From Mytilus trossulus (lineage: Eukaryota): a stretch of 64,000 bases of DNA. The position numbers were made by a program, and so were the translations under genes. The notes beneath the pieces were generated by a model. The model was not told where the DNA came from. It searched no databases and saw only the letters and a program-made list of their open reading frames with translations. Of this stretch, positions 26,711 to 51,894 are shown piece after piece (the stretch's first letter is position 1; each line of letters opens with the position of its first letter). The stretch spans positions 48,941,216 through 49,005,215 of the forward strand of contig NC_086385.1 of assembly GCF_036588685.1 (NCBI RefSeq). The letters run 5' to 3'.

Positions 26711-27391
26711 TATGGAACGCCAAAACTGTCTTATAATGGCCATTTGACATTATATGATGTGATTTTACCCTTATGTGATGTGCATTTGTCAATATATGAT
26801 GTGTACAAACCTTTATATGATGTCCAGTTGACATTATATGCTGTCCAAACATCCTTATATGATGTGCATTAACACTTTTATGATGTGCATATATACTTAT
26901 ATGATGTCCAAATATCATTATATGCTGTGCAAATATCCCTATATGATGTGCATATGTACTTATATGGTGTACAAATATACTTATATGATGTGCATATTTA
27001 CCTATATAATGTGCATATATACTTACATGATGTGCATATATATTTATATGATGTGCATGTATACTTATATGTTGTGCTTACATCCTTATGTGATGTGCAT
27101 TTATACTTATATGTCGTGCATGTATCCTTATATGATATGATTGTGTCCTTATATTATGTACAAAGAGCATTATATGTTGTACAATTGTCTTTATTTTATG
27201 TGCGTTTACCCTTATATTGTGTGCATTAATTTTTATATGATGTGATCTTATCATTATATTATGTGGTTAGACTAACTTCATTATATGGTGTCAGAACGAC
27301 ATTATATGATGTGCTTTCATCGTTGTTATGGTCAATGAACATGATTAAGATTAGAACGATTACTGTCTACGTCAAAACTGATTCCGATCCG
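26711..27391 (+). repeat. Left terminal inverted repeat (~680 bp) with ~21-bp tandem subrepeats
   Basis: Reverse complement of 50805-51894 at both the outer end and the inner end (GTCTACGTCAAAACTGATTCCGATCCG). The interior repeats a TTATATGATGTGCA-like motif at ~21-bp spacing. Confidence 0.92.
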
Positions 27392-27444
27392 CTTCTCTGA
27401 AGTTACGATAAACCCCGCTCAAATCTGTTAGTCTTGTTTGCAAA

Positions 27445-27903
27445 ATGGATGACATTTTGAAAGATTTAAACCTTGGTACGTTAGTATCGCGTTTTAATGA
27501 TGAAAAGATTACACCAGATATAGTTGGAAAATTATCGAAATATGAGTTGCAAAATTTAGGTGTAACTGATGGATCTGCAATAATGAACCTTCGTTTGAAG
27601 TGTTTAAATCATGGTTCTTCGACTATGTACCGAGCTCCTGGAATTAGGCAATTTAATATACCAGAGGATATTCTTCAATTTTTTTTGGAATGCCAGTTTA
27701 CTGTTCGTGAAATAGCAAAGCTCCTATCAGCTTCCGAAAGTACAGTGTATAGAAGAATGAGACAGTGTAATTTAAAAAAAATAAACGTTTCAAACATTTC
27801 GGAGGAAGATTTGGACTTATTGATACAGGAGCTAGTGGTGGAATTTCCTCGCTGTGGCGAAAAGATGATTAAAGAACTTTTAGTCGAAAAGACAGCTATA
27901 CAG
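27445..27903 (+). CDS. Transposase exon 1: SAM-like domain plus helix-turn-helix (153 codons)
   Basis: ORF MDDILKDLNL...ELQNLGVTDGSAIMNLR (SAM-like) and FTVREIAKLLSASESTVYRRMR (HTH). Donor CAG|GTATAT at 27903/27904, phase 0. Confidence 0.85.
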
Positions 27904-29695
27904 GTATATTCATTCTCTCTTACTTTATTGCCACTTCATTTCATTTTGTTACCTATACTAATTAACTCCCAGCCATTTTAAAAAGTATTGCTTTTAAAAC
28001 AATAGATGTAACTTTCTACTTGTGCATACTAGTACCGGAATTAATGAAAGGAGATACAAAATTGACTTCGACTCGTGTCATACATTTGGTCGAATCTTTT
28101 AATATATACTAGGTAAATGTTCTTTTTGGGCGGGAGAGTAATTGTTTTGCCTCCTCTTTTTTCTAATATCTGTAACGTCTTTGCTTTCCCGTAATTTCAA
28201 TTATCTATCACGTTTTTCTATCATGTCTATAGGTGGCACACTTAGGTTAATGATTCTAAGCAGTGTGATTGGACAAAAAAAAACAGTATCAACTGAACAT
28301 ATTTTATCAAACTGAGGGATGAATCAGGCAAAACAAACAAACGGCTATGTTACATATTTTAATTCATTTCTGAAAAGTAAAATTACTCTTCAGTTAACTG
28401 TGAATGTAGAATTTTTTGCCGTGTTAAAAAGTGGTAAAAAATTCTAAAAAGGCCATCATTATCCCTTATGGGCCAGGAAATACTACCGTGCCACCTATAC
28501 GAGTATATCTATGAGCACAAATATACTAGAAATAACTGTACTATTTTCTATCAGTGCAAAGTTAACTATCCACAGCGTTCAGTAATGGTAAGAATGACTA
28601 AAATTTGTGTTCATAAAATACACAAAAGATTTGTCCTGTCCCGAAGTACAAATACTTTTTTCTATCATTCAACTTCAACCAGACAGTAACCCACCCCATA
28701 ACAGGATCATCACACAAAGATCAGAGTACTTTGGTATTCTTAATTTTATTACGGAAGTATTGAAGTGATCTCGTAAAAATCAAGAGTTCAAAATTGATAT
28801 AAAGATAAGAATTGATAAGATAAAAATTGATACTTTAAATCGGATGAGCTTTACTTAATTTAAGGAACAATACCAGTAATAGCTTTTCAAAAAAGGCTAG
28901 CCGTCCCTTAGCTGATGAACATGGAAAGTGTTCTCGCTTTGCAGATATATAATTCATTCGGAATAGCCTTACGTTATATCAATCAACAAATTTTACCACA
29001 CAAGTGAGGTCACACGTTATGAAGTATAATATCGTTTAACGTTGTTTGTGTTTACAAAACTACAGAAGATCCGGCTATTTATAGGTTTAAGTTACCTGTT
29101 TACCAATATCATATAGGTATACGCAAAAAATATTTTAATAGGTTATGGAGCTCCTTTCTGAGATATTTGAGGTTTTTATTTAAATGGCTGGAAAGGGCTA
29201 ATCTAAATTTTAACCTTAAATTTGCATTGGTAATTTTTTGGGGTCTCTTATGGAAAGCAAAGACATCTCGAATCTGCTTAAATCTTAGTAATTCACATAT
29301 AAAGCTATTGAAGTCTTGTACGAAAATAAAAAGAGTTGTTATGGGGCAAAATATTTTGTGAAACAACAAAACAACACAAGGAAAATATTTGGCTGAAAAA
29401 ACAAACTAACAAGAACAAAATCTTTTCACGGTCAAGACGTAACTCTTAATCACAGAAATGAGATATAATTACTTCTGCTAAAATCTCCTCTAAATACATT
29501 CAGTTAACACCGTTTTCGTGAAAACTCGTACTATTATCAAAACTGTTCGAATATTTAATAAAAATTGCACCCATTTGAAGATTGGATTTATCACGACAAA
29601 ACAAAATTTTAATGATGCAAGTTCTCTAACTTATTCTGTTGCAAAATTCCCATTTCAAACTTGTAGTTTTTGAAAAAATGATAGAAATCTTTTAA

Positions 29696-30094
29696 GGATG
29701 TACTTAGGTGAGGTAAGGGGAAAATTAATAAATTAAGAAGTTAAAATTGATACTATAAGCTGGTAGAGCATCAATTAAGGATAGAAATAAGCTAAAAATA
29801 TTGATAGGTCATGGACCTCCTTTTCGAGATATTTGAGATTTAAATTATGGCGGGAAAAGGCTAACTCTGACTTTTACCTTATATTTGCAGTGGTAAAATA
29901 AGGTCTCAAAACAAAAGAAAGAAAATTAAGAATCTTCTAAAATTTTGGTAAATGACCTTTCATGAGCTATTAAGTCTTGTATGAAAAAACAAATGGGTGT
30001 TTTGGAGCAAAGAATTTTACATTGTATTGTATGGGAAAACACCAAGGAGTCCGAACATTTGACACAAATTCCAAAACCTCACCTAAGTACATCC
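29696..30094. mobile_element. MITE with TTAA duplication (Kolobok-like), in the transposase intron
   Basis: TTAA-GGATGTACTTAGGTGAGG...CCTCACCTAAGTACATCC-TTAA. A diverged copy of its interior lies at ~29140-29360. Confidence 0.82.
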
Positions 30095-30888
30095 TTAATG
30101 ATGGCTCTCTATTTAAAAGTATTAATGGGGAATAGTTTTGACACACATCTCTCAAAGAAAGAAAAAAAAACGACCTAATAATATTTGTATTTGAACTTTC
30201 TGTGATTTTTTTCTGCGACTATATTTCCTGACGAGTCATAAAGGCAAGACTATGTTATGTATCAAGTTCAACACATGGTTTTATTTTAAATGTGTAGCTC
30301 ATTAATACTAACACGTTAGTTGTGACCACTGTACTAGCTTAGTGTTTGTCATTTACAGAATTTGATGAAGTATTGCATTTGACCCTAATAAAAGTACGAT
30401 TGATAACATAATTCATTAACATCATCAAATATGACTTTCTTCGTTAATAAACGGGGTGTACTCTGTATGTGCTTTTTAATTTGTCTCGTTTATGATTTTT
30501 GGCTGTTACAGCTAACCGACCTTCGCCATGTGATATAGGGAACACGTCAGATAGGCTCATCTCTTAATAAAAGTATGCACTAGATCGGCACGACAAAATA
30601 TTACTTTAGTTGCTACAATGCATGGTATCTCTTTGGAATCTGAATACTTTAACCATAAATGCTCATTATTGCAATACTTAGTTATTACATGTAGCATACA
30701 TAATTACATTGTAGTTTAACTACTGTCACATGCACATTGGACGTTGTGCATGTACTGGTAGTCTGTCTGTCTCTTCTTCTTTTCTAAATATGCAAAAGAC
30801 TGTCGGTCAAATTGATTATTTAATTTGAAATTAATAATTTCTTCTATTTAATTTTCTATGATCTATCTATATATTCAATTTTTAACAG

Positions 30889-31773
30889 GTGACAAGATCA
30901 CGTATAAGAGAGAGCTTACATCGAATTGATGAAATTGGCATAAAGGACAGAAAGAAGAGACGATTGCATAGACGAATATACAACGTGGATGGTGTTAATC
31001 ACATCTGGCATATTGACAGTAATCACAAGCTAATCCGATGGAATTTCATTGTGTTAGGGGGAATAGATGGTTTTAGCAGATTTTTGACTTTTCTTAATTG
31101 CCGTGACAATAATAAAGCAACAACAGTCCTCGATTCTTTCAAAACTGCTGTTGTAAATTACGGGTTACCTTTACGTGTGCGCTCAGATAAAGGACAGGAA
31201 AACTCATTAGTAGCTGATTTCATGATTAAAGAGCGCGGTCCAAACCGTGGAAGTATGATTACCGGGAAAAGCTGCCACAATCAGAGAATCGAAAGGTTGT
31301 GGAGAGACGTGTTCGAAGGGGTATTGTGCTACTATTATGATCTTTTTCATTTCATGGAAGAAGAGTGTTTTCTTGATATTTCAGATGACAACAAGATGTA
31401 TGCGCTGCATCACGTTTTTTTGCCAAAAATAAATGAGAAATTGAGCGTTTGGGCACAGGCATGGGGAAAACATCGCATAAGGACTGCAAAATCGTCGCCT
31501 CTCCGATTATTTACAGCAGGAATGATAAATAATCCAACAGATTTTGATATTTTGGACATTGGAAATTATGGAACTGAGGGCAATTATGAGGACAATTTTA
31601 ATGACTACGACGGTATACAAGATACAAGGCCAATTCTAGATTCCAGGGCTTTTTCAGTAAATGCAATTTGTCAAGAAGAACTTAACTTACATTGCCCCAG
31701 TAATTGGGCATCTTCATATTATGGAATCGATATTTATCACCAAGCAGTACAAATTATTGAGAGGAATTCTTAA
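30889..31773 (+). CDS. Transposase exon 2: RNase H-like DDE integrase core (IS3/IS481/IS3EU type); spliced product 447 aa
   Basis: Acceptor TTTTTAACAG|GTG at 30888/30889, phase 0, in frame with exon 1. Motifs WHIDSNHKL (D), GIDGFSR, VRSDKGQEN (D), NQRIERLWRD (E). No internal stops. Confidence 0.93.
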   Translation: MTRSRIRESLHRIDEIGIKDRKKRRLHRRIYNVDGVNHIWHIDSNHKLIRWNFIVLGGIDGFSRFLTFLNCRDNNKATTVLDSFKTAVVNYGLPLRVRSDKGQENSLVADFMIKERGPNRGSMITGKSCHNQRIERLWRDVFEGVLCYYYDLFHFMEEECFLDISDDNKMYALHHVFLPKINEKLSVWAQAWGKHRIRTAKSSPLRLFTAGMINNPTDFDILDIGNYGTEGNYEDNFNDYDGIQDTRPILDSRAFSVNAICQEELNLHCPSNWASSYYGIDIYHQAVQIIERNS

Positions 31774-34058
31774 TTGTAAAATCAATGCTTGCAACTTTTC
31801 TGTTTAAGAAACGTGTCGTGCTTCAAATTTGTTTTCAAGTCTTTTAACATTCAGATTGATTAAAAAAAGAAGCACTACTTGAGTTCGTAAAAACAAACTG
31901 AGTAAAACAGTTTACAATTTGTATTTGTATTCTATATTCCTTTTCTTTTACAATTCGGTTCAATATAGAATGTATTAAATAAGGAGATGTGGTTGATTGC
32001 ACATGAGACAAAAATTCAGCCACCGATATGAAAAATGGGAAACAATTCAAACCAGAAATTTACGGTCTACTAAAAAAAGAAAAGTTACGAAAAACAAATA
32101 TGACACACACCAACGACAACCACTGCACCACAGATTGCTGACTTGCGACATGCAAATTAGGTATATGGGTGATTTAAAACAAGTTTATGAGCGCTCTACC
32201 GTCCTCTGACCTGGGACAGTTATTTAACAGTACAATATAAAACAAACTAAAATTTAGTTGCCTTGATTAAACTCAAAACACGTACTCGCAGTTACTGAAA
32301 ACTATCTAAAAGCCAGTTACAAATGAAATAATAATCCATGCGTTTTCTGCAAGTCTTGAGTTTGAAAATAATTTTTTTTAATATTTAACACTTTACAACC
32401 CTAAATTACATACTGAAAATTCAAAATTACACACTTAGATTTTAAAAAGATACACGGAGATGAAATAAATAGAAAAAAGACACACGTAGAAGTATAAATA
32501 GATGTAAATATATTCTGAGGCGAATGCTTCTTGTATACGTTTCTTTTATAGATAGATTTCTCATAAAACCATGCAAGTACAAAGGTTACAGAGAAGTTAT
32601 ATAAGTATAGATAGAACAACCTACTCAAACACGCCTGGGCCTAAAAATGTGTACTCCACTTTCTTTTTTGATGAGATTATCAAGAGTCAGAGATGCAAAC
32701 TGATGTTTTAAGAATAAATCTGGTCTTTCTTTTAAGATTATCGGCGGTATTTATGCAAAAAAAAAATCCACGAGAATCGACTGTTTCTAGGTACCGTACT
32801 ATAGCTTAAAAGTTTACATACACACCAACGCTGAATTTGATAATATATGTAAAAATACATACAATAGATGCATTTACTCCGATATGAGGCACATTCATTA
32901 AACTTTTAAAGCCCACAGTATTAGGTGTAAACAATTCAAATTTACTTATCTCGCCTTTCTTACATTATTCTCTAACAAAGAACTTCTTTTTTTTGTGTTT
33001 TAATTTTAACTGTGTATCCGCCTACAGAAGAGTTTTGTAGCTCAATGACATTGGCCTATTCCTATTGTTACAGTAGTATATATAATAGGCATTAAATGTC
33101 ACTGCATTTTTCTCTTTGAACAGTTTGTTCAAGTGGTTTTTTTTTAAATTTTGATAAAAATGTTCACTATTTGGTTATATTTTGTGAAAGTAAAAGGGTA
33201 TTTTCTTGCTCTTTTAGTCAGGACAGTTTTTTTTCTATACGTTGAATCAATTATTTGTTTTTATTAAACATTTAACGCCATATTAAAAAATTCCGTGCGA
33301 ATTTTTCAGTTACTTCATCTCAGTTTGTAATTTTCAGTTATCAGTGTTTAATTTTTAATTTCATTGCGTAATTTTCAGTCTTTTTAATCGCAGTGTGTTT
33401 TTGTGAAATATTTCCGAGTTCAATGTCTAACTCTCAGCGTGTTTTTAAATCTCAAAATGTCGAAATTTTTCGATAGAATAGTGTTAACATAGTTTTGACG
33501 AGAGTGACTTGCGATAGAATAAGGTAGGAGAATACAAAGTACACCACTAATTCATGGTCCCATTGCTTTCTATGTTAAATTCCTCTGTTTCAAGCAGGCA
33601 CATCTCCTTTGTTTTAAGTTAAAATGAAGTGGCAATCATTGCATTTCAAAGCAATTGCATACTTTATGGTGTCTTGTACTGAAAAAAAATCAACATAATG
33701 GCATATAAGAAAGAACTGGTTCCCGGAACTTCGGATGTACCAAAACAGGTACTTTAGATCTGATAAACAGACAACATTTACCCTCTTTTTTAAATTTAGT
33801 GCAGTTTTTTTAATATTTAAAATTGAAAGTCCAAAAGTGTTCTACAATGATCACCAGTCCTCAAGCTGTCATGTGATAACAAAAATACCTAAATATTCTA
33901 CATATTTCAAAACTTACACTCATGCGTAGGAACTATCTTTGTGTTAAATATGTACTACTTTCTGATATGTGCTTTATGGCCGGGGCCGAATTAGTGGTGT
34001 AACACCTACAGATATAGTTTACAGCAGGGCTTCAAACTTTGTGATGGTTTTGAGCTTA

Positions 34059-34286
34059 CGGGGATTTCGCCTCCTACCCAGAGGTCCTCTGCCCTGGGGT
34101 GGCTGAGACTCGGTGGGGGCATTGGCTTCAAAACTCTCACCGAGTTTGAAGCCAATGACCCCCACCGAGTCTCAGCCACCCCAGGGCAGAGGACCTCTGG
34201 GTAGGACCGAGTTTTGAAGCCAATGCCCCCACCGAGTCTCAGCCACCCCAGGGCAGAGGACCTCTGGGTAGGAGGCGAAATCCCCG
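34059..34286. repeat. GC-rich foldback: one ~70-bp unit followed by two inverted copies
   Basis: TCCTACCCAGAGGTCCTCTGCCCTGGGGTGGCTGAGACTCGGTGGGGGCATTGGCTTCAAAACTC, then its reverse complement twice in tandem. Confidence 0.9.
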
Positions 34287-34364
34287 AAAGATCACGCGAT
34301 GATTGCAGCTTCCCAGTGGTGAATTTTTCATTGCTATGTAGCAAAATTCTAATAAAACCTTCAT

Positions 34365-34700
34365 ATGAGTATATCTCCCAGTTGATGTGATATAATCATT
34401 TTTTTCCATCATGATTTCCTTGAATGAAGTCGCTACTTACAAGGGACCAAGAGTTCAAAGCGGTGAAATTGAAATCATCCCTTTTCAAGCAAATTTCCTA
34501 TAGTCATCACGAGTTAGTTGGTTTCTTTCTACTCATACACGACGGATGTCACATGCGGAATGTTAAATGCTTACTATTCTGTAGACCAGGGTTCGCTTTT
34601 CGCCTTCGTTTTCAGATGGGGTTCAAATTGCCTTCTGTAGTTATCTATGAAGCCTTTCATGTACTGTTTTATAGTTTCGACCATTTTCTTCTTTTGAAAT
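34365..34700 (+). pseudogene. Degenerate fragment of a related Penelope-like RT 3' region
   Basis: TATATCTCCCAGTTGAT, ACCAAGAGTTCAAAGCGGTGAAATTGAAATCATCCCTT and CATCACGAGTTAGTTG resemble 52435-52600. Confidence 0.65.
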
Positions 34701-34708
34701 GGGTTGTC

Positions 34709-35153
34709 TTTTTATGCCCCACCTACGATAGTAGAGGGGCATTATGTTTTCTGGTCTGTGCCTCCGTTCGTTGGTCCGTCCGTCTGTGCGTCCGTCCCCA
34801 TTTAGGTTAAAGTTTTTGGTCAAGGTAGTTTTCGATGAAGTTGAAGTCCAATCAACTTGAAACTTAGTAAACATGTGCCCTATGATAATATGATCTTTTT
34901 AATTTAAATGCCAAATTAGAGTTTTGACCCAAATTTTACGGTTCACTGAACATAGAAAATGATAGTGCAAAGTTCAGGTTAAAGTTTTTGGTCAAGGTAT
35001 TTTTTGATAAAGTAGAAGTCCAATCAACTTGAAACTTAGTGTACATGTTCCCTTTGATAACATCATTCTAATTTTAATGCCAAATTAGAGAATTTATTCC
35101 AATTTGATAGTGCCAGTGGGGCATCCGTGTACTGTGGACACATTCTTGTTTTT
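34709..35153 (+). mobile_element. Non-autonomous Helentron-like (HINE-type) repeat
   Basis: TTTTATGCCCCACC...GGGGCAT sub-terminal IR, (TCCG)n microsatellite, duplicated core and 3' hairpin GTGTACTGTGGACAC, ending CTTGTTTT. Second copy at 53809-54062. Confidence 0.7.
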
Positions 35154-36530
35154 CAAGTGATGAGTTTGTATACAACTTTGAGATTTTCAGTCTCTCATTA
35201 AATTTCTTTTTTCAAGGTGATTTCATTGTCCTGATTTAGAATTTAATTGTCTTTTGATATAGAGAATAATGTCCGAAACCAGATACTTTAGAATATGGTT
35301 AAATGGAGATGATATCATGGTAAATCAATCTATCATAAAAAAATTAATCCAAACCTTATAAAAATAGTGAAAAAGCAAGTTCTTTAACAAGTATTTTAAC
35401 TTCATATAATTTTCACACCTTCATACGAGAACATTTCGATATTGGACGCATGACATAAATTATTTGCATAGATGCACAGGTGCATGTGACATACGAAATA
35501 AAAGCAACACATATTATATCACAGGAGATACTAAATTGCTTTAAAAAGTATTCTAAGTAGAATATTCACTGTAGATTGAAAGTTTGACAAAATGCATGCA
35601 TGTGCCTGTCTGTCCCAAGTCAGGAGCCTTTAATTCAGTGGTTGTCGTTTGTTTATGTGTTACATATTTGTTTTATGTACATTTATTTATTTATATAAGG
35701 CAATAGTTTTTTTCGTTTGAAATGTTTTACATTGTCAGATCCGGGCCTTTTATGGCTGACTATGCGGTGTATGGGTTTTGCTCATGGTTGAAGGCCCGCG
35801 TACGATGACCTATATTTGTTAATTTCTGTGTCATTTTGTTCTCTCGTGGAGAGTTGTCTTATTGGCAATCATACCACATCTTCTTTTTGATATGTGAGGT
35901 AAAACAAGAACATAGATTTCAATGAAACCCCATCTTAAAAAGTTTAATAAAACTCGGTCCACGTGAAGATTCAGAAGAAATAATTCTTTTCTCTCTACAG
36001 TGTTAAGTAAAAACAATCATATGCCTGAAATTTTAGAGTCAAGAGCAATGACTCTATAGTTTAACAAAATATAAGCATGGGAACAAGCTTCATACATGAG
36101 TTACAAAATAATGAAACTAATTGTTCAATCGTCAAAGTAAAACACAAGACTTCATACAATCTTAGACGTCATTAACAAATTTCTAACCATAATTATAGTC
36201 CTGATACAATTATTATATATGAACACTTCCATGCTTTAGATAAATGTCTTAGATAGAACAGTTTTTCATTTACTGCTGTTAAGAACTGATTCAAGGAACT
36301 GTCATTTTTGACATATATATAATATACAATACTGGAATGTATTGACTCCTGTTCAATCAAGCTAAGGGAAATTACAAACACTCAAATCATATTTGAAGTA
36401 CATAAATTTTTAAAATCTGTCTTAATATCTTTCTAATAGTATAAACACATGTTCTATACGAGGAGCAGTGTTTTCTATTTCTGCTAGTAATTAACAAAAT
36501 ACACATAATGTAATTGAACTCAAGATCTGA

Positions 36531-36787
36531 CTACTGCAATCCATAGTAAGCATTGCAGAAAGCGTAATCGAAAAAGTTAAACAAGACATCTTCTTCAGGA
36601 AGCTTCCCTCCATTCTCTGGAACTGTTAGCATTAGTCGGTTGATGCACGTATTGCCTGTGGGTAGATGTGATTTACGCTCTGAAAAATGTAGACTTGGGT
36701 GCAATGTAAACCCTAATATTGGTTCCTCTTCCACACTGGTTGCAAATTTCAGAACTTTGGCTAAGTTAACATCGCCCCTTCTTCCAC
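36531..36787 (-). CDS. SAM-HECT gene exon 6 (HECT C-lobe with catalytic Cys); spliced product 633 aa
   Basis: (S)GRRGDVNLAKVLKFATSVEEEPILGFTLHPSLHFSERKSHLPTGNTCINRLML...NAYYGLQ*. LPTxNTCxNxLxL is the HECT active-site motif. The six exons sum to 1902 nt (634 codons including the stop). Confidence 0.9.
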
Positions 36788-37531: not shown

Positions 37532-37709
37532 TAGCAGCTTCTCTTAAATATTTAAGAAATTTAGAATAGACTTTTTTTTCGGCTTTCATTCGATTTGACC
37601 CCTCTGCAGCAAACTCAGGCTTCAATAAAGTTGTTATTTTCTTGAAAGTGATCGGGGTTGGTTGAATTGGTGTGAACAAGTGGATTAATGAGGGTAAACT
37701 TCTGACCAA
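37532..37709 (-). CDS. SAM-HECT gene exon 5
   Basis: LVRSLPSLIHLFTP...LLKPEFAAEGSNRMKAEKKVYSKFLKYLREAA. Acceptor TTTTCAG, donor A|GTAAGT, phases 0 and 1. Confidence 0.88.
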
Positions 37710-38507: not shown

Positions 38508-38644
38508 CTGATAAAATCCCAAAGAATCAAGACCCCTGCGAAGGTCTTTTACAAATTGCCTTGGTTCCTCCGTATCAAAAAGTTCTTCTATCAGATCTGT
38601 TGTCATGATTCGTGGTAGAGCTCCATTCTGAAGGATGCTGAGAG
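38508..38644 (-). CDS. SAM-HECT gene exon 4
   Basis: Hand translation (A)LSILQNGALPRIMTTDLIEELFDTEEPRQFVKDLRRGLDSLGFYQ. Acceptor TTCTAG, donor CAG|GTACAG, phases 1 and 0. Confidence 0.85.
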
Positions 38645-39196
38645 CTAGAACAGAAGCATTGTATATTAAAATACAGAGTAGTTGAGACTGTTATTTAAAA
38701 ATAACATTTTTCAATTATTTCGTTATCTTGCTTTATGTTCCAAGCTTAAATATAATACATGATAAGTGTGTTTATACCCTTTAAAATAATACCCAAGAAT
38801 TAAGTAAGAGATATATTGGGTGTTACCATGAGATGTCATACAGGTGTAGTTGCCGCAGAGATTTCTGGACACGTACATTCTGCGTGTGACTGATATCCGA
38901 ACTTATTACGTATAGATACGCAAATATTATCGAGTGCAAAATAACATTACTTACTTATGAAAATATGTTTTAAAAAAACATTTATAAGTAGATCATATAA
39001 AAATGTTTTGTCGAGAAATATATAAATATCTATACGAATGAATGAGAAGACCGCTCTTCCTCCCACAATAAATTTCGACTTACAAAATTTAATCAGTCAG
39101 CAAAAAAAATTGATCCGAAACTAATTACGAGCTAAGTAATCTAGATAATAGATGTAGCGAGAAGAACATATGCATAATCTAGTGAGAAATAATTAC

Positions 39197-39323
39197 CAAA
39201 TATCTTCCCAATAACCTCATAATCTTTTGACCACTCCTTAACTGGATCAAAATACTTCTGTTTGATATCTCTCATTAGAATTGCAAAAAATTCCTTTCGT
39301 GGTCCACCCAAATCAACTGCACC
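39197..39323 (-). CDS. SAM-HECT gene exon 3 (HECT N-lobe)
   Basis: Hand translation GAVDLGGPRKEFFAILMRDIKQKYFDPVKEWSKDYEVIGKIF contains the HECT D-x-GGPxxEFF motif. AG/GT boundaries, phases 0 and 1. Absent from the ORF track. Confidence 0.9.
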
Positions 39324-41219: not shown

Positions 41220-42232
41220 CTCCTCATAAAACTGTACTTGCAAAGTCAATCTAAGATCTGTAAGGGCAGTTATCTCTTCAAAAGCCGATTGCAACAAAGT
41301 ATCCCTATCAACCAAAATAAAATTGGTTTCACCATCATTAGTTGTGGCATCATCTGAAAGATCCAGGTCTCGGCCACAAACAATTTTCTCTTGTATGTGC
41401 CGAAGAATGTCAACAGGATCTGTTACCTCATGTTCGGTACAGAAATCTATGCAAGAGTTTATTGTTCGCTTCAATAGATCTTCAGTCTGTCCCGTCATTT
41501 CAGTAGTGGTTTCATTATTATTTCTAGCTAAATGCAAAGGTGGAAGATCTTCATCTGAATTGTCAACCGAATCAAATTCTGTTGGAAGGTTAAAACTAGA
41601 TGTGCTTTGTATTTCTGCAAAAGGTTCTGTTGACTGTACATTTTGTACATTATCATCACAATCCTTCAAATGATCTCTAAGATCTGTTATCAGAATATCT
41701 TTTTCGCAAAATCTGCATTTTTCTTTTATTTCCGATGTATTTGCAATCTGGACAACGGGACTTGCACTCATTGATAAGTTTGCTTGAATTGGTCGAATGT
41801 AAATTTTAGATTGACCACCAATTATTGACCTCAAACTTTCTGGTGTATATTTACTAGATATGATTTCTAGTAATCTGCAATTGCTTTGGCATCGTAGAAG
41901 CTCAAACCCACCACAATCTCGCAACTTGTTGAATCCTTCCTCGCTAAATAGTTTTTTTGTGAAGAGCTCTTCACTATCATCTAAGCAAAATTGTATTTTC
42001 TTGTTTCCCAAGCCTGCTCTTTTCAGCACCACCTTTTCTTCTCCGGTAGGCGTTTTAATGGCGTCTCTGTTGGACAGACAGACGAACTCACAAGTCCATG
42101 TCCTGGGTTTTTTATTCTTCTGTCTGCTACTAGTGGTAGCAGTAAATCTGGACCTAGATGGTCTAAACAATGAAATTCTTTCTTCAAGATTCTGTGCAAT
42201 TCTATCTTCACCTCTCTGTGGGCGAGTATGTG
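41220..42232 (-). CDS. SAM-HECT gene exon 2: conserved globular domain, CxxC-HxxxC zinc finger, acidic linker, start of HECT
   Basis: Acceptor TTTTTTAG|CA. Open frame includes WTCEFVCL...AGLG...GGFELLR...KIYIRPIQ, CRFCEKDILITDLRDHLKDC and ILVDRDTLLQSAFEEI...LQVQFYEE. Donor GAG|GTATAG, phase 0. Confidence 0.88.
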
Positions 42233-42698
42233 CTAAAAAATAATTAAATATCTCACAGTGATACCTATGGCATTTTTTTCTTACCTACAGTATGAAATAA
42301 GTCACAATAAAATTAACAAACGATGAGGTCGATTTGGGGTTCCGTCTTTTTTTTTCTTTTTTTTCTGGAAAACAGCAAAACACAGTCGTTCGAGCTCTCT
42401 GAAGAAATGACGCAAATTTGGAGGCAATCTAGCAACACATTTCTTAAAATTAAAATTCAAATAAAGAATTGTTGATGTTAATATTTGGTTTGTTTGTTTT
42501 GTACAATACGGAATTATTTGCATTGCTATTCCGAAGCCATGACCAATTTCCCCTTGATTCTTTTCATTCGATTAGATAGGCTAATCATGTTTTAAAGAAC
42601 CCGGTAGATGCTCATTATAGTACATGAAATTACGTCACATTATCTATTTGTATACCTTGAACAGGTATTCCTTCAAAAAACAAGGCCAAGGCTATTGC

Positions 42699-43772
42699 TT
42701 TTTGTCGAGCCTGCAACTTTTGTTGCAGAAAGCTCGACATAGGGATAGTGATCCGGCGGCGGCGGCGGTGTTAGCTCACTTCTTAAAAGCTTAATATTTT
42801 AGAAGGTAGAAGACCTGGATGCTTCATACTTTGTATATTGATGCCTCATGTTACGAACTTTCCGTCAGTCAACTGTCCAATGTTCTTGACCTCATTTTCA
42901 TGGTTCAGTAACTACTTGAAAAAAAAGTTCAATTTTTTTGTAATGTTAAATTCTCTCTTATTATAAGTAACTGGATAACTATATTTGGTAAGTGCGTACT
43001 TTGCAAGGTCCTCATGACCGTCAGATAGTTTTCACTTGACCTCGACCTCATTTTATGGATCAGTGAACAAGGTTAAGTTTTCGTGGTCAAGTCCATATCT
43101 CAGATACTATAAGCAATGGGTCTTGTATATTCGGTGTATGGAAGGACCGTAAGGTGTACATGTCCAACTGGCAGGTGACATATGACCTTGACCTCATTTT
43201 CATGGTTCAGTGGTTATAGTTAAGTTTTTGTGTTTTGGTCTGTTTTTCTTAAACTATATGCAATAGGTCTACTATAATTGGTGTATGGAATGATTGTAAG
43301 GTGTACATGTCTAGCTGACAGGTGTCATTTGACTTTGACCTCATTTTCATGGTTCAGTGGTCAAAGTTAAATTTTTTAGTTTTGGTCTATTTTTCTAATA
43401 CTTTATGCATTAGGTCAACCATATTTGGTGTATGGAAATATTTTATGAACTATATGTCAGTTACGCAGGTTTTATTTGACCTTGACTTCATTTTCACGGT
43501 CCATTGCTAAGTTTTAAGTGTTTGTGTTTTGGTCTGTTTTTCTTTATTTATAAGCAATAGTTGTATTGAAAAATTGTTAGCTGTACATGTCTGCCTGGCA
43601 TGGTTCATCTGACCTTGACCTCATTTTCATGGTTCATTGATCAATGTTTCATTTTCTTGGTTAATGTTGAGTTTATGTGACAGTTGTAATAAAGCTTTAT
43701 ATTTAGGTCTATCAAGATAGTATCAAGGATTAGTAAAGAAGGCGAGACATTTCAGTGTGTGCACTCTTGTTT
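42699..43772 (+). mobile_element. Helentron-like repeat with internal ~140-150-bp tandem cores
   Basis: 5' TTTTGTCGAGC...GCTCGACA IR, (GGC)n tract, reiterated TGACCTTGACCTCATTTTCATGGTTCA, 3' ...GCACTCTTGTTTT. Confidence 0.65.
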
Positions 43773-43974
43773 TATATTGATTTTTTTTTAAATTGTCAAT
43801 AAGCCATATAGTATCGAACAAATTCAAATGGGATGCTGTTTTTCTTATTTTGAATATATGTATAAAATTGAGAATGGAAATGGGGAATGTGTCAAAGAGA
43901 CAACAACTCGACCAAATAAAAAACAACATAATTGTATAATTTAGTTACTTTAGAACAAAATCGAAAATTATGAA

Positions 43975-44358
43975 TAAAATTGAGAATGGGAATGGGGAAT
44001 GTATCAAAGAGACAACAACTCGACCATAGAAAAAACAACAGCGGTAGGTCACCAACGGGTCTTCAATCTAACGATAAATTCCCGCACCCGGAGGTGTCCT
44101 TCAGCTGGTACCTAAACAAATATATACTAGTTCAGTGGTAATGAACGCCATACTAATTTCCAAATTGTACACAAGAAACTTAAATTCAAATAATACAAGA
44201 CTGACAAAGGCCAGAGGCTCCTGACTTGGGACAGGCGCAAAAATGCGGCGGGGTTAAACATGTTTGTGAGATCTCAACCCTCCCCTATACCTCTAACCAA
44301 TGTAGAAAAGTAAACGCATAACAATACGCACATTAAAATTCAGTTCAAGAGAAGTCCA
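43975..44358 (+). repeat. Dispersed high-copy SINE-like repeat
   Basis: Begins AAAATTGAGAATGG.AATGGGGAATGT. Other copies at 43863-43928 (+), 38340-38498 (-), 55305-55568 (-) and ~23695 (decayed). Confidence 0.8.
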
Positions 44359-46253
44359 GGGTGTTGTTCAGCTTAGATTTTTTTTAAATCTTGTCCAAAG
44401 TTGGGGTCGGGCACCCTACCCCATCCTTACGGAATAAAAAATGTTCTACAGCAATAATTTTTTCGCCACTAGGTGCAATGTGAAGCTGAATAGCTAAGGT
44501 CTACTTGAGAAAAATCAAGGGTGTAGTTCGGCTTTGATTTTTTTTTAAATTTGGTCCAAAGTTGGGGTCGGGCACCCTACCCCACCCTTACGGAAATATA
44601 AATAAAAAATGTTCTACGGCAATACTTTTTTTGCCACTAGGTGCAATGTGAAGCTGAATAGCTAAGGTCTACTTGAGAAAAATCAAGGGTGTAGTTCGGC
44701 TTTGATTTTTTTAAAATCTGGTCCAAAGTTGGGGTCGGCACCCTACCCCTCCCTTACGGAAATATAAATAAAGAATGTTCTACGGTAATACTTTTTTTGC
44801 CACTAGGTGCGATTTGAAGCTGAATAGCTAAGGTCTACTTGAGAAAAAATCAAGGGTGTGGTTCGGCTTAGATTTTTTTTTTAATTTGGTCCAAAGTTGG
44901 GGTCGGGCACCCTATCCCACCCTTACGGAAATATAAATAAAACATGTTCTACGGCAATACTTTTTTCGCCACTAGGTGAGATGTGAAGCTGAATAGCTAA
45001 GGTCTACTTGAGAAAAAATCAAGGGTGTGGTTCGGCTTAGATTTTTTTTTATTTTGGTTCAAAGTTGGGGTCGGGCACCCTAACCCACCCTAACGGAAAT
45101 GTAAATAAAAATGATCTACGGCAATACTTTTTTCGCCACTAGGTGCGATGTGAAGCTGAATAGCTAAGGTCTACTTGAGAAAAATCCAGGGTGTTGTTCA
45201 GCTTAGTTTTTTTTTTAATCTGGTCCAAAGTTGGGGTCGGGCACCCTACCCAACCCTTACGGAAATGTGAATAAAAAATGTTTTACGGCAATACTTTTTT
45301 CGCCACTAGATGCAATGTGAAGCTGAATAGCTAAGGTCTACTTGAGAAAAAATCAAGGGTGTGGTTCGGCTTAGATTTTTTTTTTAATTTGGTCCAAAGT
45401 TTGGGTCGGGCACCCTATCCCACCCTTACGGAAATGTAAATAAAAAATGTTCTACGGCAATACTTTTTTCGCCACTAGGTGCAATGTGAAGATGAATAGT
45501 TAAGGTCTACTTGAGAAAATTTCAATGGTGTAGTTCGGCTTAGATTTTTTTTTAATTTGGTTCAAAGTTGGGGTCGGGCACCCTACCCCATCCTTACGGA
45601 AATATAAATAAAAAATGTTTTACGGTAATACTTTTTCACAACTAGGTGCAATGTGAAGCTGAATAGCTAAGGTCTACTTGAGAAAAAATCAAGGGTGTGG
45701 TTCGGCTTAGATTTTTTTTAATTTGGTCCAAAGTTGGGGTCGGGCACCATACCCCACCCTTACGGAAATGTAAATAAAAAATGTTCTACGGCAATACTTT
45801 TTTCGCCACTAGGTGCGATGTGAAGCTGAATAGCTAAGTTCTACTTGAGAAAAATCCAGGGTGTTGTTCTGCTTAGATTTTTTTTTAAATCTGGTCCAAA
45901 GTTGGGGTCGGGCACCCTACCCAACCCTAACGGAAATGTAAATAAAAAATGTTCTACGGCAATAATTTTTTCGCCACTAGGTGCGATGTGATGCTGAATA
46001 GCTAAGGTCTACTTGAGAAAAAATCAAGGGTGTAGTTCGGCTTAGATTTTTTTTTAAATTTGGTCCAAAGTTGGGGTCGGGCACCCTACCCCACCCTTAC
46101 GGAAATATAAATAAAAAATGTTCTACGGCAATACTTTTTTTGCCACTAGGTGCAATGTGAAGCTGAATAGCTAAGGTCTACTTGGGAAAAAATCAAGGGT
46201 GTGGTTCGGCTTAATTTTTTTTTAATTTGGTCCAAAGTTGGGGTCGGGCACCC
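44355..46253. repeat. Tandem satellite, ~168-bp unit, ~11 copies, in intron 1 of the SAM-HECT gene
   Basis: GTTGGGGTCGGGCACC-like anchor recurs at 44400, 44561, 44728, 44896, 45064, 45230, 45399, 45567, 45733, 45901, 46070 and 46237. Confidence 0.97.
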
Positions 46254-49200
46254 ATAGAAGATATGGTTTGGTGCCAATGAGACAACTATCTGCAAGAAAC
46301 CAAAAAAACACAGATTTACAAACTATGGGTCGCCGTACGGCCTTCAACAACAGGCAAAGCCTATTTCGCATAGTCGGCTATAAAAGGACCCGAAATGATA
46401 ATGTAAAACAAATAGTCAAAACAGAAAATTAACAAAGTCCGTATCATCGTATGCGTAACTTAGTTGCTCACCAGAGGAACACTACGCAAGCGTTTAAACG
46501 CGCGTTGCATAAGTTTGAAGTACCCCGAAATGCAAAGGTATACGCTTGGTGAACGCTTTTACCTCAGGAAATTTTAATTAAGAATTGAATGCTTTTTTTT
46601 GTAAATTTATTGGGGTGTAAAAGCGTTGACCAAGTACATTTAATATGAAGCGCGGAAGCGCTTCATACTAAAAATGTGCGCACGGTCAACGCTTTTACAA
46701 CCCTATAAAGGTACAAAAAAAAAAACATTCAATACTTATAATTACATTTTTACCTATAGGATCATGAAAACACGCCTTTTATCAAGTTTTTATTTCATTT
46801 TTCTGTGCACTTTATTGTGGGACCTCGTGTCATCATAAATGAAAAGTTGCATTGTGTAATGCAATTGATTAAGGAATATCACGAGGTTGCTAGTTAGCCA
46901 ATCAGAATAACGTACATGTATTATAATGAAACATACATCAAATGCAATTATTGGAACATAAAAAAAAAAATCATTCAGCTGAAGCATTTGTCAAGCGTAT
47001 ACCTGTAAACTGCACGCACATAATATACACGCTACACGAGCGTTGAAAACGCTACAGATAAGTTTGAGACACGTTAAGGGCACATTGCATACAAAAATAC
47101 TCGTCTCCTTAAAGCCTTCATTCAGGAGAAGTCCGATACGGGTGAAACTTCATCAAACCTACAGAAGATATTACACCCTCTCCAACCATGCAGCATGGGA
47201 CAAGACATAGAAGCACTGGAATGCTCCCATTATTTTGAGCTGTACAAGATCTACTAAAATATCCCACCTGCCTCAAAGGTGCATAGGATCGACCATGGTC
47301 CAGCACTAATGATACAAGTATCAATCAGAGTTACAATGACGTGGGAGTAAGTATTCAAAGGCCACCGAGCGGCCTCCAACAATAAAAAAAAAACTATTTA
47401 TAATTAGTCGGCTATTAAATGCCCCGACCATTAAGATTTAAAAACAAAAATCAAACAAAACTAAACAGCCTTATTGATAACGAAATAATTAACGAAATAA
47501 AACTTGACCGACATGAACTATGAACAACAACCACTGTACTCATGTTCCTAGCTTAAGAATGGGCATTGGCACATAAACAATGTGGTGGCCATAAACTCAA
47601 CCCTCCCATATGAACCAAACCTAGGACAGCACATCGCAAGAAAAAACTGTAAAATATCAGTTGCAATTCGCGTCCCTAAAGATATGGGTACGGTGCACAA
47701 TAATCACTTACATAAAACAATAGAAACAAATCACTGGAATAAAAGTACTTGCACTTACCGAAAGCTATTCCAAAGCTAGTGAAAAAGTAGACGAACCAGT
47801 GGACATAGACGGACTGGTAAACATGTAAACAGACGGATGAATGTGACAGACTTATTGACATACATTCACATATAGACAGACCTGCAGTTGGGAATGTAGA
47901 AAGACTAGGGGAAACGCATAGGTACGCTTCACGCACACCCAATACACGCTTTAAGCTCGTTGTGCACACGATACAGATATGATTGACAGGCTGAATGCAT
48001 CAACATTACTAACGTATTGGTAGCGTGCATGATTTTTTTTACCATGGCCGACGTACGTCGGAGCTATATGTTGATGTGTGAAGCCGGTATTACATTAAGT
48101 AAGCAGGCAATGTCAGTTTCTAATTCTTATGCACAACAAAAGTAATATAAAACAATACATCTTTATTAAACAACTATCTAATATATAATGTCAAACAAGC
48201 ATTTGGGTTTACGATTGCATTTCTTTTTAAAAAAAAAGCAACTTGTTTATATATTAAACATTGGTTATATATAGATAAAAGAATTTTGAGTACGTTTGAA
48301 TCTTATTCAATTTTTGGGTTCATAGACACACCCGAAAAGTGGCTGCTAGCGTAGTGACTGCTAGCGAGTGGCTGCTAGCTTGAGCCTGGTAATGATTTAT
48401 ACTCTGTATCATATATTTCAACAGGAGAGTATATATGTGAACTGCTTTCTGATCCCTAGCACCTGGGTTACCTTCATTTCTTCTTTTGTCTTACAGCAGC
48501 CGAGCAGGCTATTTATCAAACTACTGTATTTAATACTACTAAATATATGATTAGTATGGTTATAACCGTATGATAATAGACTGAAATTATCGTAAATTCC
48601 ATAAATTTCGAATTGGTGCTTAGTGGGCTTATATGAAATATTTATCATATGCTTCAAATATTAGCACGTGCCTTTCCGTAGTAACGTTATCGTAGGACAT
48701 TCGGGTGATACACATCACATCAATGATACTTTTCAGTGAAAAAACATTAAAAAGTAGGGTACAAAAGAATTTTTTGGATACAGGAAAGTATATTGTGTAA
48801 AATTCAATAAAAAGAATATCAAGCAATCAATTAGATAAACGAACTAACAAATGATAAAAAAACGCATTCTAAAAAGAATGCAACATATCTCAGAAAATTA
48901 CTTGGATGATTTTTTTTTTGTTGAATGTTTTTTTTTAATCGTTCTCATAAGAATAAGTCATACTGTTGTTTTATTTCTCTGTTGAGGCATTTGATAGACA
49001 TCTCTCATTTTGAATGTATTTCCTTTTGGGTCAGACGTCTGTGAACTTTTCACTCTTTGAACTTCTATTTTTCCATTAATCTGGGTTTTTTTCGCCATTG
49101 TTGGAGCATATATAATAAATCATTTTTCATATCGCATGATTTATCAGCCCTCGGTCAATATCAGCCTTTGAGTCATGCGACCCTTGAGCTGATATTGTAC

Positions 49201-49924
49201 CTAGGACTGATAATTTATACGATATGAAAAATGCCATGCAATAAGCTGATAATTGCAGTTTTTCAGTAAAACGTTGAATAACTGATATACTTTTAATGAA
49301 ATCCGTTTGATTTATGTTCATGGCTCCTATTTTCCACTTACAAATTCAATATTAAAGAAAACTGTGGAAAAATTTGTTCCATTAGCGCAAGCAAACATGT
49401 GCTTTATTTTATTTCATTTTTAAATTACAAATTAAAAATTTAATATGTACTACTTTTACCGGATTCCAGACAAAATAAAGAATTTTTTACAGTGAGTTGC
49501 TCCCCCTCCCCCTTTTATGAATACTTCTAGATCGTCCACTTCTCTTTATTCATTTATTTTTTTCTCTATATAGTAACTATATTGACACTCATCACCTATA
49601 TTTTTTCTTTGACGTTGATTTTTTTATAGTTTATTACGTGAGAGCACCCAACTTGCACATATTTTTACTGCTTTTTTACCTACGTTTTTTTATGATCCAG
49701 ATTGGATAAAAACAAAGCCCTTGTTAGAGAAGGAGTCAGGGAGGGGCAGGGAGGGGCAGGGAGGGGCGGGTCCCTAACGGACCTATGCTAAAACAGTTAC
49801 TTTAACGGTTAATGCAGGCTTTGACTTTTTCAAACTTGTGGCAAAGGAAAACTTCACTTTTATACATATACTCTAGTCGAAATAAAATAGCCTTTCAAGA
49901 CGACAGAAATATTTGGACTAACAT

Positions 49925-50039
49925 CACAGGAGTTTGAAATCCTATCAATAAGGGGGCTATCACAGTAGAGCTTCTCTCGTTTGATAGTCGACTTTGGTAT
50001 ATGTTTACCCCCTTATTTTTAGGATTTCAAACTCCTGTG
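49925..50039. mobile_element. 115-bp MITE with 7-bp TSD (CA..TG ends, P-element-like)
   Basis: CTAACAT-CACAGGAGTTTGAAATCCTA...TAGGATTTCAAACTCCTGTG-CTAACAT. Confidence 0.75.
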
Positions 50040-50075
50040 CTAACATATAGCCCAAGAACGGATTTAGGGGGAGCC

Positions 50076-50281
50076 TAGTCCAAATAATAATGACGTCTTG
50101 AAAGGCTATTATATTATTTTTTTTTGACGCCTTACATATTATATTTTTTTCTTTGACGCCTTAACCAAAGACGTCAAAAGGCGTCAAAGAAAAAAAATAT
50201 AATAGCCTTTCAAGACGTCGATGTAGGGCGTCAAAGAAAAAAAAAGAAAAACCTTTCAAGACGTCATAATTATTTGGACTA
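50076..50281. mobile_element. 206-bp foldback MITE with 9-bp TSD (TAG..CTA ends; Academ- or MULE-like)
   Basis: GGGGGAGCC-TAGTCCAAATAATAATGACGTCTTGAAAGG...CCTTTCAAGACGTCATAATTATTTGGACTA-GGGGGAGCC. Confidence 0.8.
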
Positions 50282-50590
50282 GGGGGAGCCTAGAGGTCCC
50301 GGAACCTTTAAGTTGAAAAAAATTGGTTGGTTATATAGGGAATCACTTTCGCATGACTGGACAGAGGCGGATTTAGGGGTGTGCCCCCCCCCCCCCCCCC
50401 CACTTTTGGGAAAAAAAATTGGTTACTGAAGCGTGACTGGAGCGGGCCCCCTCTTAGGTCAGTAAGTGGGGCCCCACTTATGAAAATTTCTAGATCCGCC
50501 ACTGCTGGAGCCCATTCTCTCCCCTAACAAAAAGTTCTGTATCCGCAAATGTTTATGAATAAATATATATAATTATATGTTGGCTCTTAC

Positions 50591-50780
50591 CTTTATTTAC
50601 CTCTGACCTGAACCGTGTTCGGTCTCCAATTGTCGTAATTCCCAGTCGCGACAAGTCTGCATCTGTTAAGGCACGACACGTTTCTAAATTGTCAACTTTA
50701 CTTTCAATGAAATTGTTTAACAAGTCATTTAAATTAATTTTTGTCAGCACTGCTTCCACGTTTGTTAGCGTCGACGCCAT
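50591..50780 (-). CDS. SAM-HECT gene exon 1: SAM domain
   Basis: MASTLTNVEAVLTKINLNDLLNNFIESKVDNLETCRALTDADLSRLGITTIGDRTRFRSEVNK has a SAM signature (LTDADLxxLGIxxxGDR). Donor AAG|GTAAGA, phase 1, matches the acceptor phase at 42232. Confidence 0.8.
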
Positions 50781-50804
50781 CTTAAGTAAAAATTATTTAA
50801 ACAT

Positions 50805-51894
50805 CGGATCGGAATCAGTTTTGACGTAGACCGTATGATCCACGTGGTATAATCATTCTAATCATAATCATGTTCATTGACCATAACAACGATGAAAGCA
50901 CATCATATAATGACGTTCTGGCATCATATAATGAAGTAAGTCTAACCACATCATATAAAGATGTTTGCACACAATATAATGGAAAACGCACATAATATAA
51001 AGATATTTGTACATAATATAAGGATATTTGTACATAATATAAAGATATTTGTACATAATATAAAGATATTTGTACATAATATAAAGATGTTTGTACATAA
51101 TATAAGTGAAACATCACATAATATAAAGATGTTAGCACATAATATAAGGAAAAAAGCACATAAAGCACATGATATACAGACATGTGGACAGCATATACAA
51201 TCATTCGTGCATAATATAAGGACAAAATCACACCATATAAGGATGTTTGCACATCATATAAGTATATTAACACATTATATAAGTAGATTTGCACATCATA
51301 TAATAAAGTGAATAGAACCACATAATATAATGATAAAATTACATCATATAAAGATCTTTGCATATACTATAAGGGTAAATGCACATAATATAAAGACAAT
51401 TGCACATCATATAATGTAATTTGTACATAATATAAGGACACAATCACATCATATAATGATATTTGAACATCATATAAGGAAACCTGCACCTAGTATAAGT
51501 ATACATGCACATCATGTAAGGATGTATGCACTTCATATAAGTGTATATACACATCATATAAGTAAATATGCACATCATATAAGTATATGTGCACACCATA
51601 TAAGTAAATATGCACATCATATAAGTATATGTGCACACCGTATAAGTAAATATGCACATCATATAGGGATATTTGCACAGCATATACGGATATTTGCACA
51701 TCATATAAGTATATATGCACATCATAAAAGTGTATATGTACATCGTATAAGGATATTTGGACATTACATAATGTCAACAAGATACCATATAAAGGTTTGT
51801 ACACATCATATATTGACAAATGCACATCATATAAGGGTAAACTCACATCATATAATGTCAAATGGCCATAATAAGACAGTTTTGGCGTTCCATA
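50805..51894 (-). repeat. Right terminal inverted repeat (~1090 bp), with more 21-bp subunits than the left
   Basis: Runs from CGGATCGGAATCAGTTTTGACGTAGAC to ...GACAGTTTTGGCGTTCCATA. Units such as AAAGATATTTGTACATAATAT repeat at ~51000-51100. Confidence 0.92.

Follow-up and report, generated by a model that had tools for sequence, protein, structure and literature searches.

A two-gene transposon of the IS3EU/GingerRoot type in Mytilus trossulus, combining a predicted DDE transposase with a putative HECT ubiquitin ligase

A DNA transposon is commonly pictured as a transposase gene between two ends. Few such elements are to our knowledge endowed with a conserved second gene, and each known case has been instructive: the Myb-like partner of Harbinger, the RAG2-like gene of ProtoRAG and the TET/JBP genes of fungal elements. 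Whether a ubiquitin ligase can be such a second gene is the question raised by a 64-kb stretch of the Mytilus trossulus genome, called here the window (C13:48941216-49005215, where C1, C2, C4 and so on designate sequences of the 1.3-Gb assembly, of about 32% GC). The initial annotation of this window had proposed a 25-kb transposon bordered by matching terminal inverted repeats (TIRs) and a 6-bp target site duplication (TSD), with two convergent spliced genes, one for a transposase and one for a HECT ligase, both carrying a SAM domain, and had taken the ligase as a dedicated gene of the element rather than a host gene. We read the locus as an autonomous and recently active IS3EU/GingerRoot transposon, belonging to a clade with a conserved gene set of two inward-reading genes, and give this reading a probability of about 0.85.

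The ends of the element (Table 1) are well defined. Both TIRs are present as announced, in the form of two arms of 449 nt each that are 88% complementary. They consist of tandem ~21-bp units, 24.6 copies at the left end and 25.6 copies at the right one, where an additional array follows. These tandem units are likely to be repeated transposase-binding sites. The tips read TATGGAACGCC... at the left and ...GGCGTTCCATA at the right, giving the pattern TATGG...CCATA. Among 30 other ends of the family that were inspected, 28 start with TATGG and one with TACGG, the last one being a mutated tip.

The element is inserted in a copy of a dispersed repeat, and an uninterrupted paralogue of the target, equivalent to an empty site, lies on the minus strand of C1. 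There, the left flank aligns down to position 70370802, while query base 2 of the right flank falls at 70370806, so that its first base is extrapolated to 70370807. On this paralogue, six bases exactly are thus common to both flanks, as expected for a precise insertion accompanied by a 6-bp duplication. The right flank continues the interrupted repeat for its first 50 bases only, a different retroelement being present from 51945 onward.

Comparison of four copies, on C13 (the present one), C4, C6 and C11, establishes that this structure is mobile as one unit. Their left ends are 99.5-99.7% identical and their right ends 96-98.7%, homology sets in precisely with TATGG, and each copy stands between unrelated flanks with a TSD of its own, which is perfect (6/6) for C11 and C6. 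In each of the four, the transposase core and the big HECT exon have remained intact, at 99% identity. With such copies and intact frames, the family may still be active in Mytilus. A protein of Mytilus galloprovincialis (P0001) shows 99% identity to the transposase exon.

Two of these copies have a peculiar arrangement in the assembly. The C11 copy is split into C11:36236988-36242050 (L003) and C11:36380248-36390737 (L002), its transposase and HECT halves being about 140 kb apart. Both of its ends are on the minus strand and its outer flanks, GGCTGT and ACAGCC, are reverse complements that amount to one 6-bp TSD. Split halves with matching flanks point to an inversion with a breakpoint inside the element, or to a misorientation in the assembly. 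For the C6 copy, the left end (C6:57955250, L004) and the right end (C6:58211522, L009) are separated by 256 kb, again with matching flanks (CACTAG/CTAGTG). Both genes lie at normal spacing beside the left end, and the L009 tip is the mutated one (TACTATGAACG). This spacing of the ends suggests an insertion or rearrangement of about 230 kb in HECT intron 1, or an assembly problem.

Gene models were guided by full-length relatives and by an intronless homologue, splice junctions being read directly. Searches were run exon by exon, while natural proteins (P0282, P0147 and others) and the intronless open reading frame (ORF) L062:182-2329 served for questions about full-length proteins. The two genes are convergent and all six of their introns are GT-AG, with consistent phases. 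Their start codons are located 734 bp and 1114 bp inward of the two tips, directly past the repeat arrays. Thus the exon models of 447 and 633 aa given by the initial annotation, as well as the start of each gene just inside a TIR and the DDE and HECT motifs, were all recovered.

The first gene is a predicted transposase, composed of a SAM-like domain, a helix-turn-helix and a DDE core of the rva_4 type. Its two exons, of 153 and 294 codons, encode 447 aa. Exon 1 is colinear with the full-length relatives P0010, P0015 and P0029. Exon 2 matches Pfam rve (E=5e-5) besides rva_4 (PF24764; Table 1), and its D, D and E residues stand in the motifs HIWHID, RVRSD and HNQRIER. The domain scan of exon 1 returned helix-turn-helix families and a sub-threshold SAM only, and no HHCC zinc-binding integrase domain. 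The assignment of a SAM domain to both proteins, made in the initial annotation, holds without reserve for the ligase, whose exon 1 passes the cut-off (30.6 bits versus 23), whereas the transposase N-terminus stays below it (SAM_1, E=0.0038, 18 bits versus 23) but cross-matches the HECT SAM exons of other loci with 40-50% identity and E values down to 6e-8.

The second gene has six exons on the minus strand and encodes a 633-aa protein. This comprises a SAM domain, a ubiquitin-like (UBL) beta-grasp domain, a C2HC finger and an acidic linker, followed by a HECT domain whose N-lobe is shortened and whose catalytic Cys is conserved. In the AlphaFold2 (AF2) model of exon 2 (m924c37aa9b7d), the block-mean predicted local distance difference test score (pLDDT) is above 90 across residues ~61-170. 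Foldseek gave weak matches only, to the UBL domains of SAP18 and USP7 (best E=3e-3), and the finger is recognized by zf_C2HC_14 with E=0.005.

The HECT assignment is anchored at both extremities of the domain. At the start of the N-lobe, a block reading QFYEE / GAVDLGGPRKEFF over the exon 2-3 junction contains the pattern F-x-x-E-x-x-x-D-x-G-G-x-x-[RK]-E-[FW]-F, with the motif LGGPRKEFF, of which GGPRKEFF is nearly invariant among homologues. Positions 413-467 of the family profile align here with residues 28-84 of AREL1 (whole protein E=6e-14). In the C-lobe, LPTGNTC of exon 6 is aligned with LPTASTC, the catalytic loop of UBE3C. Of 14 homologues covering the LP(T/S)xxTC motif, from four phyla, 13 have the catalytic Cys, as does the query ORF, and an aromatic residue is retained at position -4 from the C-terminus. 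The family profile matches the HECT domains of AREL1, E6AP, Rsp5 and others, both at the N-lobe start and in the C-lobe. Pfam HECT matches eight of nine full-length relatives as well as exon 6, its recognition being restricted to the C-lobe part (profile positions 214-289 of 306). Moreover, every top Foldseek match of the L062 model is a HECT domain (E=2.5e-5), though TM-scores are low.

The association of these two genes extends to diverged elements of the same genome. Eleven loci carry a transposase 51-62% identical to the present one, and in eight of them the big HECT exon is located nearby, on the opposite strand and in convergent orientation. Half of these eight paired loci, on C9, C8 (two) and C10, were examined in full, the pairs on C2, C1, C13 and C6b lying outside this sample. 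While their transposases are only 51-60% identical to that of this copy, the four elements contain all exons of both genes with unchanged order and orientation, between TIRs of 343-896 bp that start with TATGGAACGCC and perfect 6-bp TSDs (CAATTC, AATCCA, AAATAC and GTATTG). One of the C8 elements and the C10 element are 97-99% identical, so the four correspond to three diverged lineages. In every copy, the HECT gene starts at the same place, just inside the TIR array.

The big HECT exon itself has taken unusual forms at other places of the genome. In the C8_47 lineage (L043:484-2421, equivalent to C8:47345484-47347421), the linker of the HECT protein has grown to about 330 low-complexity residues rich in N, T, G and M, the frame being kept in an exon of 645 aa. 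On C5, between about 49 and 72 Mb, some 15 short and stop-ridden fragments of this exon lie on one chromosome arm with no transposase match nearby. Such a cluster could consist of decayed old copies, or could result from the amplification of one fragment.

The pairing is also found outside this genome. When a profile of the big exon was run against metagenome contigs, 43 loci were retrieved. On contigs L051, L077, L082, L083, L085 and L093, the transposase core is present downstream on the opposite strand, that is, as a convergent pair. L051 accommodates the complete HECT gene, along with the transposase in its 3' half, within 4.5 kb. L077 includes a complete element of 10.2 kb, with perfect TIRs of 57 bp starting with TATGG and a 5-bp duplication. 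On L070, the tip TATGGAACGCC is located 540 bp upstream of the SAM exon. No protein of the compared contigs exceeds 55% identity with the named relatives sampled, and the contigs are consequently attributed to other organisms. The whole ligase ORF occurs intronless in L060:357-2117 (Ga0314674_10020809) and L062:182-2329 (Ga0314714_10019543), with 586 and 715 aa respectively. Since related genomic contigs have introns there, these two are probably transcripts, which would mean expression of the gene in another organism.

Relatives of the ligase form 1597 representative clusters at E<=0.001, one Magallana gigas cluster including 106 member sequences. The named ones come from more than 15 bivalve species, five cnidarians, one crinoid and one hemichordate, and most of those scanned have in common the layout SAM ... 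C2HC ... HECT. About 80 named relatives are annotated as 'uncharacterized', as 'HECT-type E3 ubiquitin transferase' or, wrongly, as 'leucine-rich repeat-containing protein DDB_G0290503'. The initial annotation had supposed that many invertebrate 'G2E3-like' proteins could be such transposon genes. Names and architecture gave no support to this, no direct comparison with G2E3 itself being made: none of these ~80 relatives is called G2E3-like, and none of the nearest Atlas clusters G2E3. The N-terminus of the ligase gave no match to PHD or RING fingers, SAM, UBL and the C2HC finger being the domains found there.

The two genes have a common history. Maximum-likelihood trees built with the transposase core and with the big HECT exon, a comparison that the initial annotation had called for, both give ((C8_55,C10),C8_47) and (L082,L085), show no supported conflict and are congruent where resolved. 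Pairwise identities of the two genes are also correlated (Pearson 0.91, Spearman 0.40), a value that depends on two close pairs and on non-independent comparisons, and we therefore rely on the congruence of the trees instead. Between lineages, synonymous divergence (pS) is saturated at 0.72-0.90 for both genes while non-synonymous divergence (pN) is 0.15-0.47. Because of this saturation, dN/dS is not computable and pN was compared with pS. Both genes are under purifying selection, and transposase and HECT genes have been co-inherited over the long term. Together with this, the recurrence of one layout inside TIRs and TSDs, in all four copies of ~99% identity as well as in four diverged elements, and its presence on foreign contigs strongly support the proposal that the HECT gene belongs to the element as a dedicated second gene and is not a host gene.

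As regards the family, the published signature of IS3EU consists of TA..TA termini (TAYGG..CCRTA), TIRs longer than 30 bp, a 6-bp TSD and an integrase-like DDE domain without HHCC finger (PMC10045372; PMC12730594). IS3EU and GingerRoot have been merged into one lineage (PMC10045372; PMC12730594; PMC6839031), with corals, sea anemones, fish and plants as hosts (PMC6839031; PMC10045372; PMC12730594). The element described here is like them in all these features, and fits IS3EU/GingerRoot by its termini, TSD length, DDE type and absent HHCC finger, the placement being made by published description. Its very long TIRs of ~25 tandem 21-bp units are a difference from those published descriptions, in which there is no mention either of a second gene related to HECT or ubiquitin or bearing a SAM domain.

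Several known systems present partial analogies. ProtoRAG is bounded by TIRs and contains two convergent genes, for a transposase and its obligatory partner, and RAG1 carries a RING E3 module. The present element resembles it in the convergent two-gene layout between TIRs and in the E3 module, whereas ProtoRAG has a transposase of an unrelated superfamily, a 5-bp TSD and a RING fused to the transposase, in place of a separate HECT protein. In this Transib-type transposon, the two genes are RAG1-like and RAG2-like (PMC4411706). The TET-positive IS3EU elements of fungi belong to the same superfamily, carry accessory enzymes inside their TIRs, with an alpha-kinase gene opposite to the transposase, and constitute a precedent for conserved non-transposase enzymes in IS3EU elements (PMC12730594). 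Theirs are a dioxygenase and a kinase, in rusts and truffles, while here a HECT ligase is found in marine invertebrates. Furthermore, fungal TET/JBP genes hop between transposon superfamilies, whereas the ligase here appears to co-diverge with the transposase.

Helitrons and Helentrons with VTD and OTU domains also associate eukaryotic DNA transposons with enzymes of the ubiquitin system, including in cnidarians, and these were proposed to affect the stability of transposition proteins (PMC9741609). However, the Helitron enzymes take ubiquitin off and form part of a polyprotein, RepHel, in rolling-circle elements, unlike the present putative ubiquitin-adding enzyme, encoded by a separate gene of a cut-and-paste DDE element. 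As for cellular HECT ligases (AREL1, E6AP/UBE3A, NEDD4/Rsp5 and UBE3C), the N-lobe start motif and the C-lobe with its catalytic Cys align with them and Foldseek reports HECT, yet the transposon protein has about 90 fewer N-lobe residues and a unique SAM/UBL/C2HC N-terminus, and its gene is multicopy and inside a transposon. In our searches of the literature on IS3EU, GingerRoot and transposon-borne HECT or ubiquitin ligases, no HECT gene in a DNA transposon came up; Repbase and Dfam were outside this scope, and their curators may have recorded the pairing.

How could the ligase serve the element? We suppose that the helix-turn-helix of the transposase would bind the ~25 tandem 21-bp units in each end and that the transposase would oligomerise via its SAM domain. 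The ligase would be recruited into this assembly by a SAM-SAM contact and would then ubiquitylate either the transposase itself or proteins of the chromatin at the donor or target site. This could help the transposition complex to assemble, to turn over or to be removed, or could protect the element from host repression. Functions of this kind (transposase turnover, chromatin modification, anti-silencing) had been put forward in the initial annotation and are speculation. SAM domains typically self-associate. Complex prediction with the SAM domains of the two proteins gave a score of 0.56, compared with 0.00 for the best control, the three runs agreeing in 100% of contacts and the pLDDT of the partners being at least 85. 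In the benchmark of this method, 51 of 78 solved complexes reached the mark, as did 2 of 108 mismatched pairs. The prediction lends weak support to a SAM-SAM contact and is treated as a lead. As a whole, the mechanism of array-bound transposase, SAM-recruited ligase and local ubiquitylation is a tentative proposal, whose chances we place somewhat below even. The wider claim, that an ancient IS3EU clade present in molluscs, cnidarians, echinoderms and hemichordates relies on a HECT ligase of its own as a SAM-docked transposition cofactor on 21-bp arrays, appears doubtful at this stage.

Alternatively, the ligase could be a gene of the element that is aimed at host factors, as an anti-silencing or host-manipulation effector degrading repressors or altering chromatin marks. 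This echoes the TET/JBP and alpha-kinase genes of fungal IS3EU, proposed to act against methylation-based silencing (PMC12730594), and the VTD and OTU deubiquitinases of Helitrons and Helentrons, thought to act on host ubiquitin signalling (PMC9741609). The ubiquitin-like and zinc-finger domains could then be substrate- or ubiquitin-binding modules. However, the SAM domain in common with the transposase, together with the weak support for a SAM-SAM contact, favours an action within the transposase assembly, and we consider a purely host-directed role unlikely, while deserving serious attention.

Less probable still is that the HECT-like domain would be inactive in ubiquitin transfer, the protein acting as a structural cofactor of the transposase, as RAG2-like does for RAG1-like in ProtoRAG, or as a ubiquitin- or DNA-binding adaptor. 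The N-lobe is indeed about 90 residues short between conserved anchors, with 136 residues between the two anchored motifs versus 228 in AREL1, and the Pfam match is limited to the C-lobe part. This could mean that the subdomain for E2 binding is absent, and ligase activity is putative. Nevertheless, the conservation of the Cys across phyla, of the aromatic residue at -4 and of the GGPRKEFF motif would be hard to explain without catalysis. Lastly, that the HECT gene would be a passive cargo captured once, or a host gene caught between two unrelated transposon ends, finds an argument in the host gene fragments captured by GingerRoot in Selaginella (PMC6839031) and in the large size of the element with its unrelated nested repeats, but is very improbable in view of a full gene with conserved exons in every examined lineage, to ~45-50% transposase identity, and on foreign contigs, of perfect TSDs enclosing both genes, of congruent trees, of pN far below pS and of the same start inside the TIR array. 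A host gene between chance ends, a segmental duplication and an assembly artefact were each considered and rejected as explanation of the pairing.

To return to the element as a two-gene transposon with its own SAM-docked ligase, some of our results weigh against this reading. The TSD matches at five of six positions only, both in this copy and in the C4 copy. The 6-bp length initially annotated stands, given the overlap of six bases on the C1 paralogue and the 6/6 duplications of the diverged elements. The SAM regions of the two proteins of this copy gave no BLASTP alignment to each other, and their predicted contact, at 0.56, is in a range where passes are more often wrong than right (at scores up to 0.60, the benchmark includes 5 of the 78 solved complexes and all four mismatches that passed) and may reflect memory of solved SAM complexes. 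The shortened N-lobe belongs here too, as does the poor quality of the full-length AF2 model of L062 (mean pLDDT 58, with a low-confidence C-lobe), which was used for fold class only.

Finally, other IS3EU-like transposase lineages of this genome are without a big HECT exon nearby, so that the ligase is specific to a clade and not a requirement of the superfamily. One of them, with a 47% identical transposase, has an intact frame of 528 aa with identical scores at 11 loci (e.g. C11:25791591, C2:94644653 and C3:13672269), the frames being shorter at three more loci. The big-exon search of the genome found no HECT exon near these loci: this is a young lineage without ligase.

Table 1. Coordinates of the element and its features, numbered from the first base of the window.
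Feature	Position	Strand	Basis or remark
Whole transposon, IS3EU/GingerRoot type	26711..51894		25,184 bp; TIR pair, copy homology starting at TATGG, empty-site paralogue
Left TSD, GTTGTC	26705..26710		six-base flank overlap on C1:70370802-70370807
Right TSD, CTTGTC	51895..51900		identical to left copy at 5/6 positions
Left TIR, tip TATGGAACGCCAAAACTGTC	26711..27159	+	~21-bp unit array at 26750-27265
Right TIR	51446..51894	-	arrays of 21-bp units, 51229-51771 and 50948-51147
Transposase exon 1, 153 codons, SAM-like N-terminus and helix-turn-helix	27445..27903	+	HTH_23 E=2e-4; donor CAG/GTATAT
Transposase exon 2, 294 codons and stop, predicted DDE integrase-type core	30889..31773	+	rva_4 E=1e-75; acceptor AACAG/
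HECT exon 1, SAM domain	50591..50780	-	SAM_1 E=4.4e-7, 30.6 bits versus cut-off 23; phase-1 donor AAAG/GTAAGA
HECT exon 2, ubiquitin-like beta-grasp, C2HC zinc finger, acidic linker, start of HECT N-lobe	41220..42232	-	AF2 model, Foldseek, zf_C2HC_14
HECT exon 3, N-lobe GGPRKEFF motif	39197..39323	-	family profile aligns motif to AREL1 residues 28-84
HECT exon 4, N-lobe	38508..38644	-	colinear with intronless homologue L062, residues 518-570
HECT exon 5, N-lobe	37532..37709	-	colinear with L062, residues 569-629
HECT exon 6, C-lobe with catalytic Cys (LPTGNTC), stop codon	36531..36787	-	Pfam HECT E=1.1e-6, 28.9 bits versus cut-off 23.9
169-bp satellite	44358..46253		11.4 copies, 91% match; nested in HECT intron 1; filler outside the machinery

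Other sequences are present in and around the element. Besides the satellite of Table 1, HECT intron 1 contains a second repeat, of 147 bp in 3.6 copies, at 43032-43560. These intron 1 repeats explain part of the 25-kb length, related elements measuring 10-28 kb. Between the two gene ends, region 34006-34874 is richer in GC and is probably a small nested repeat. It contains a tandem duplication of 67 bp, and ORFs overlap there on the two strands. Fifty bases past the right end, a retroelement fragment with a weak RVT_1 match is found at 51945-52292 (ORFs 51896-52303 and 52335-52655). At least 39 other genomic loci are 100% identical to it over 348 bp, and this retroelement family is hence very young and probably active.

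If the ligase does act as a transposition cofactor, this would be the first DNA transposon known with its own ubiquitin-writing enzyme, and would provide a natural link between ubiquitylation and the assembly or disassembly of transposition complexes. A HECT ligase retained alongside its transposase across such deep divergence, and in numerous marine invertebrate genomes, would show a cut-and-paste element exploiting the host ubiquitin system by means of its own writer, complementing the deubiquitinases of Helitrons. For annotation, hundreds of bivalve and cnidarian gene models now called 'uncharacterized' or 'HECT-type E3 ubiquitin transferase' probably belong to transposons, and such models are not to be counted as expansions of the host ubiquitin pathway. 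The possible current activity of the Mytilus family makes these elements experimentally tractable.

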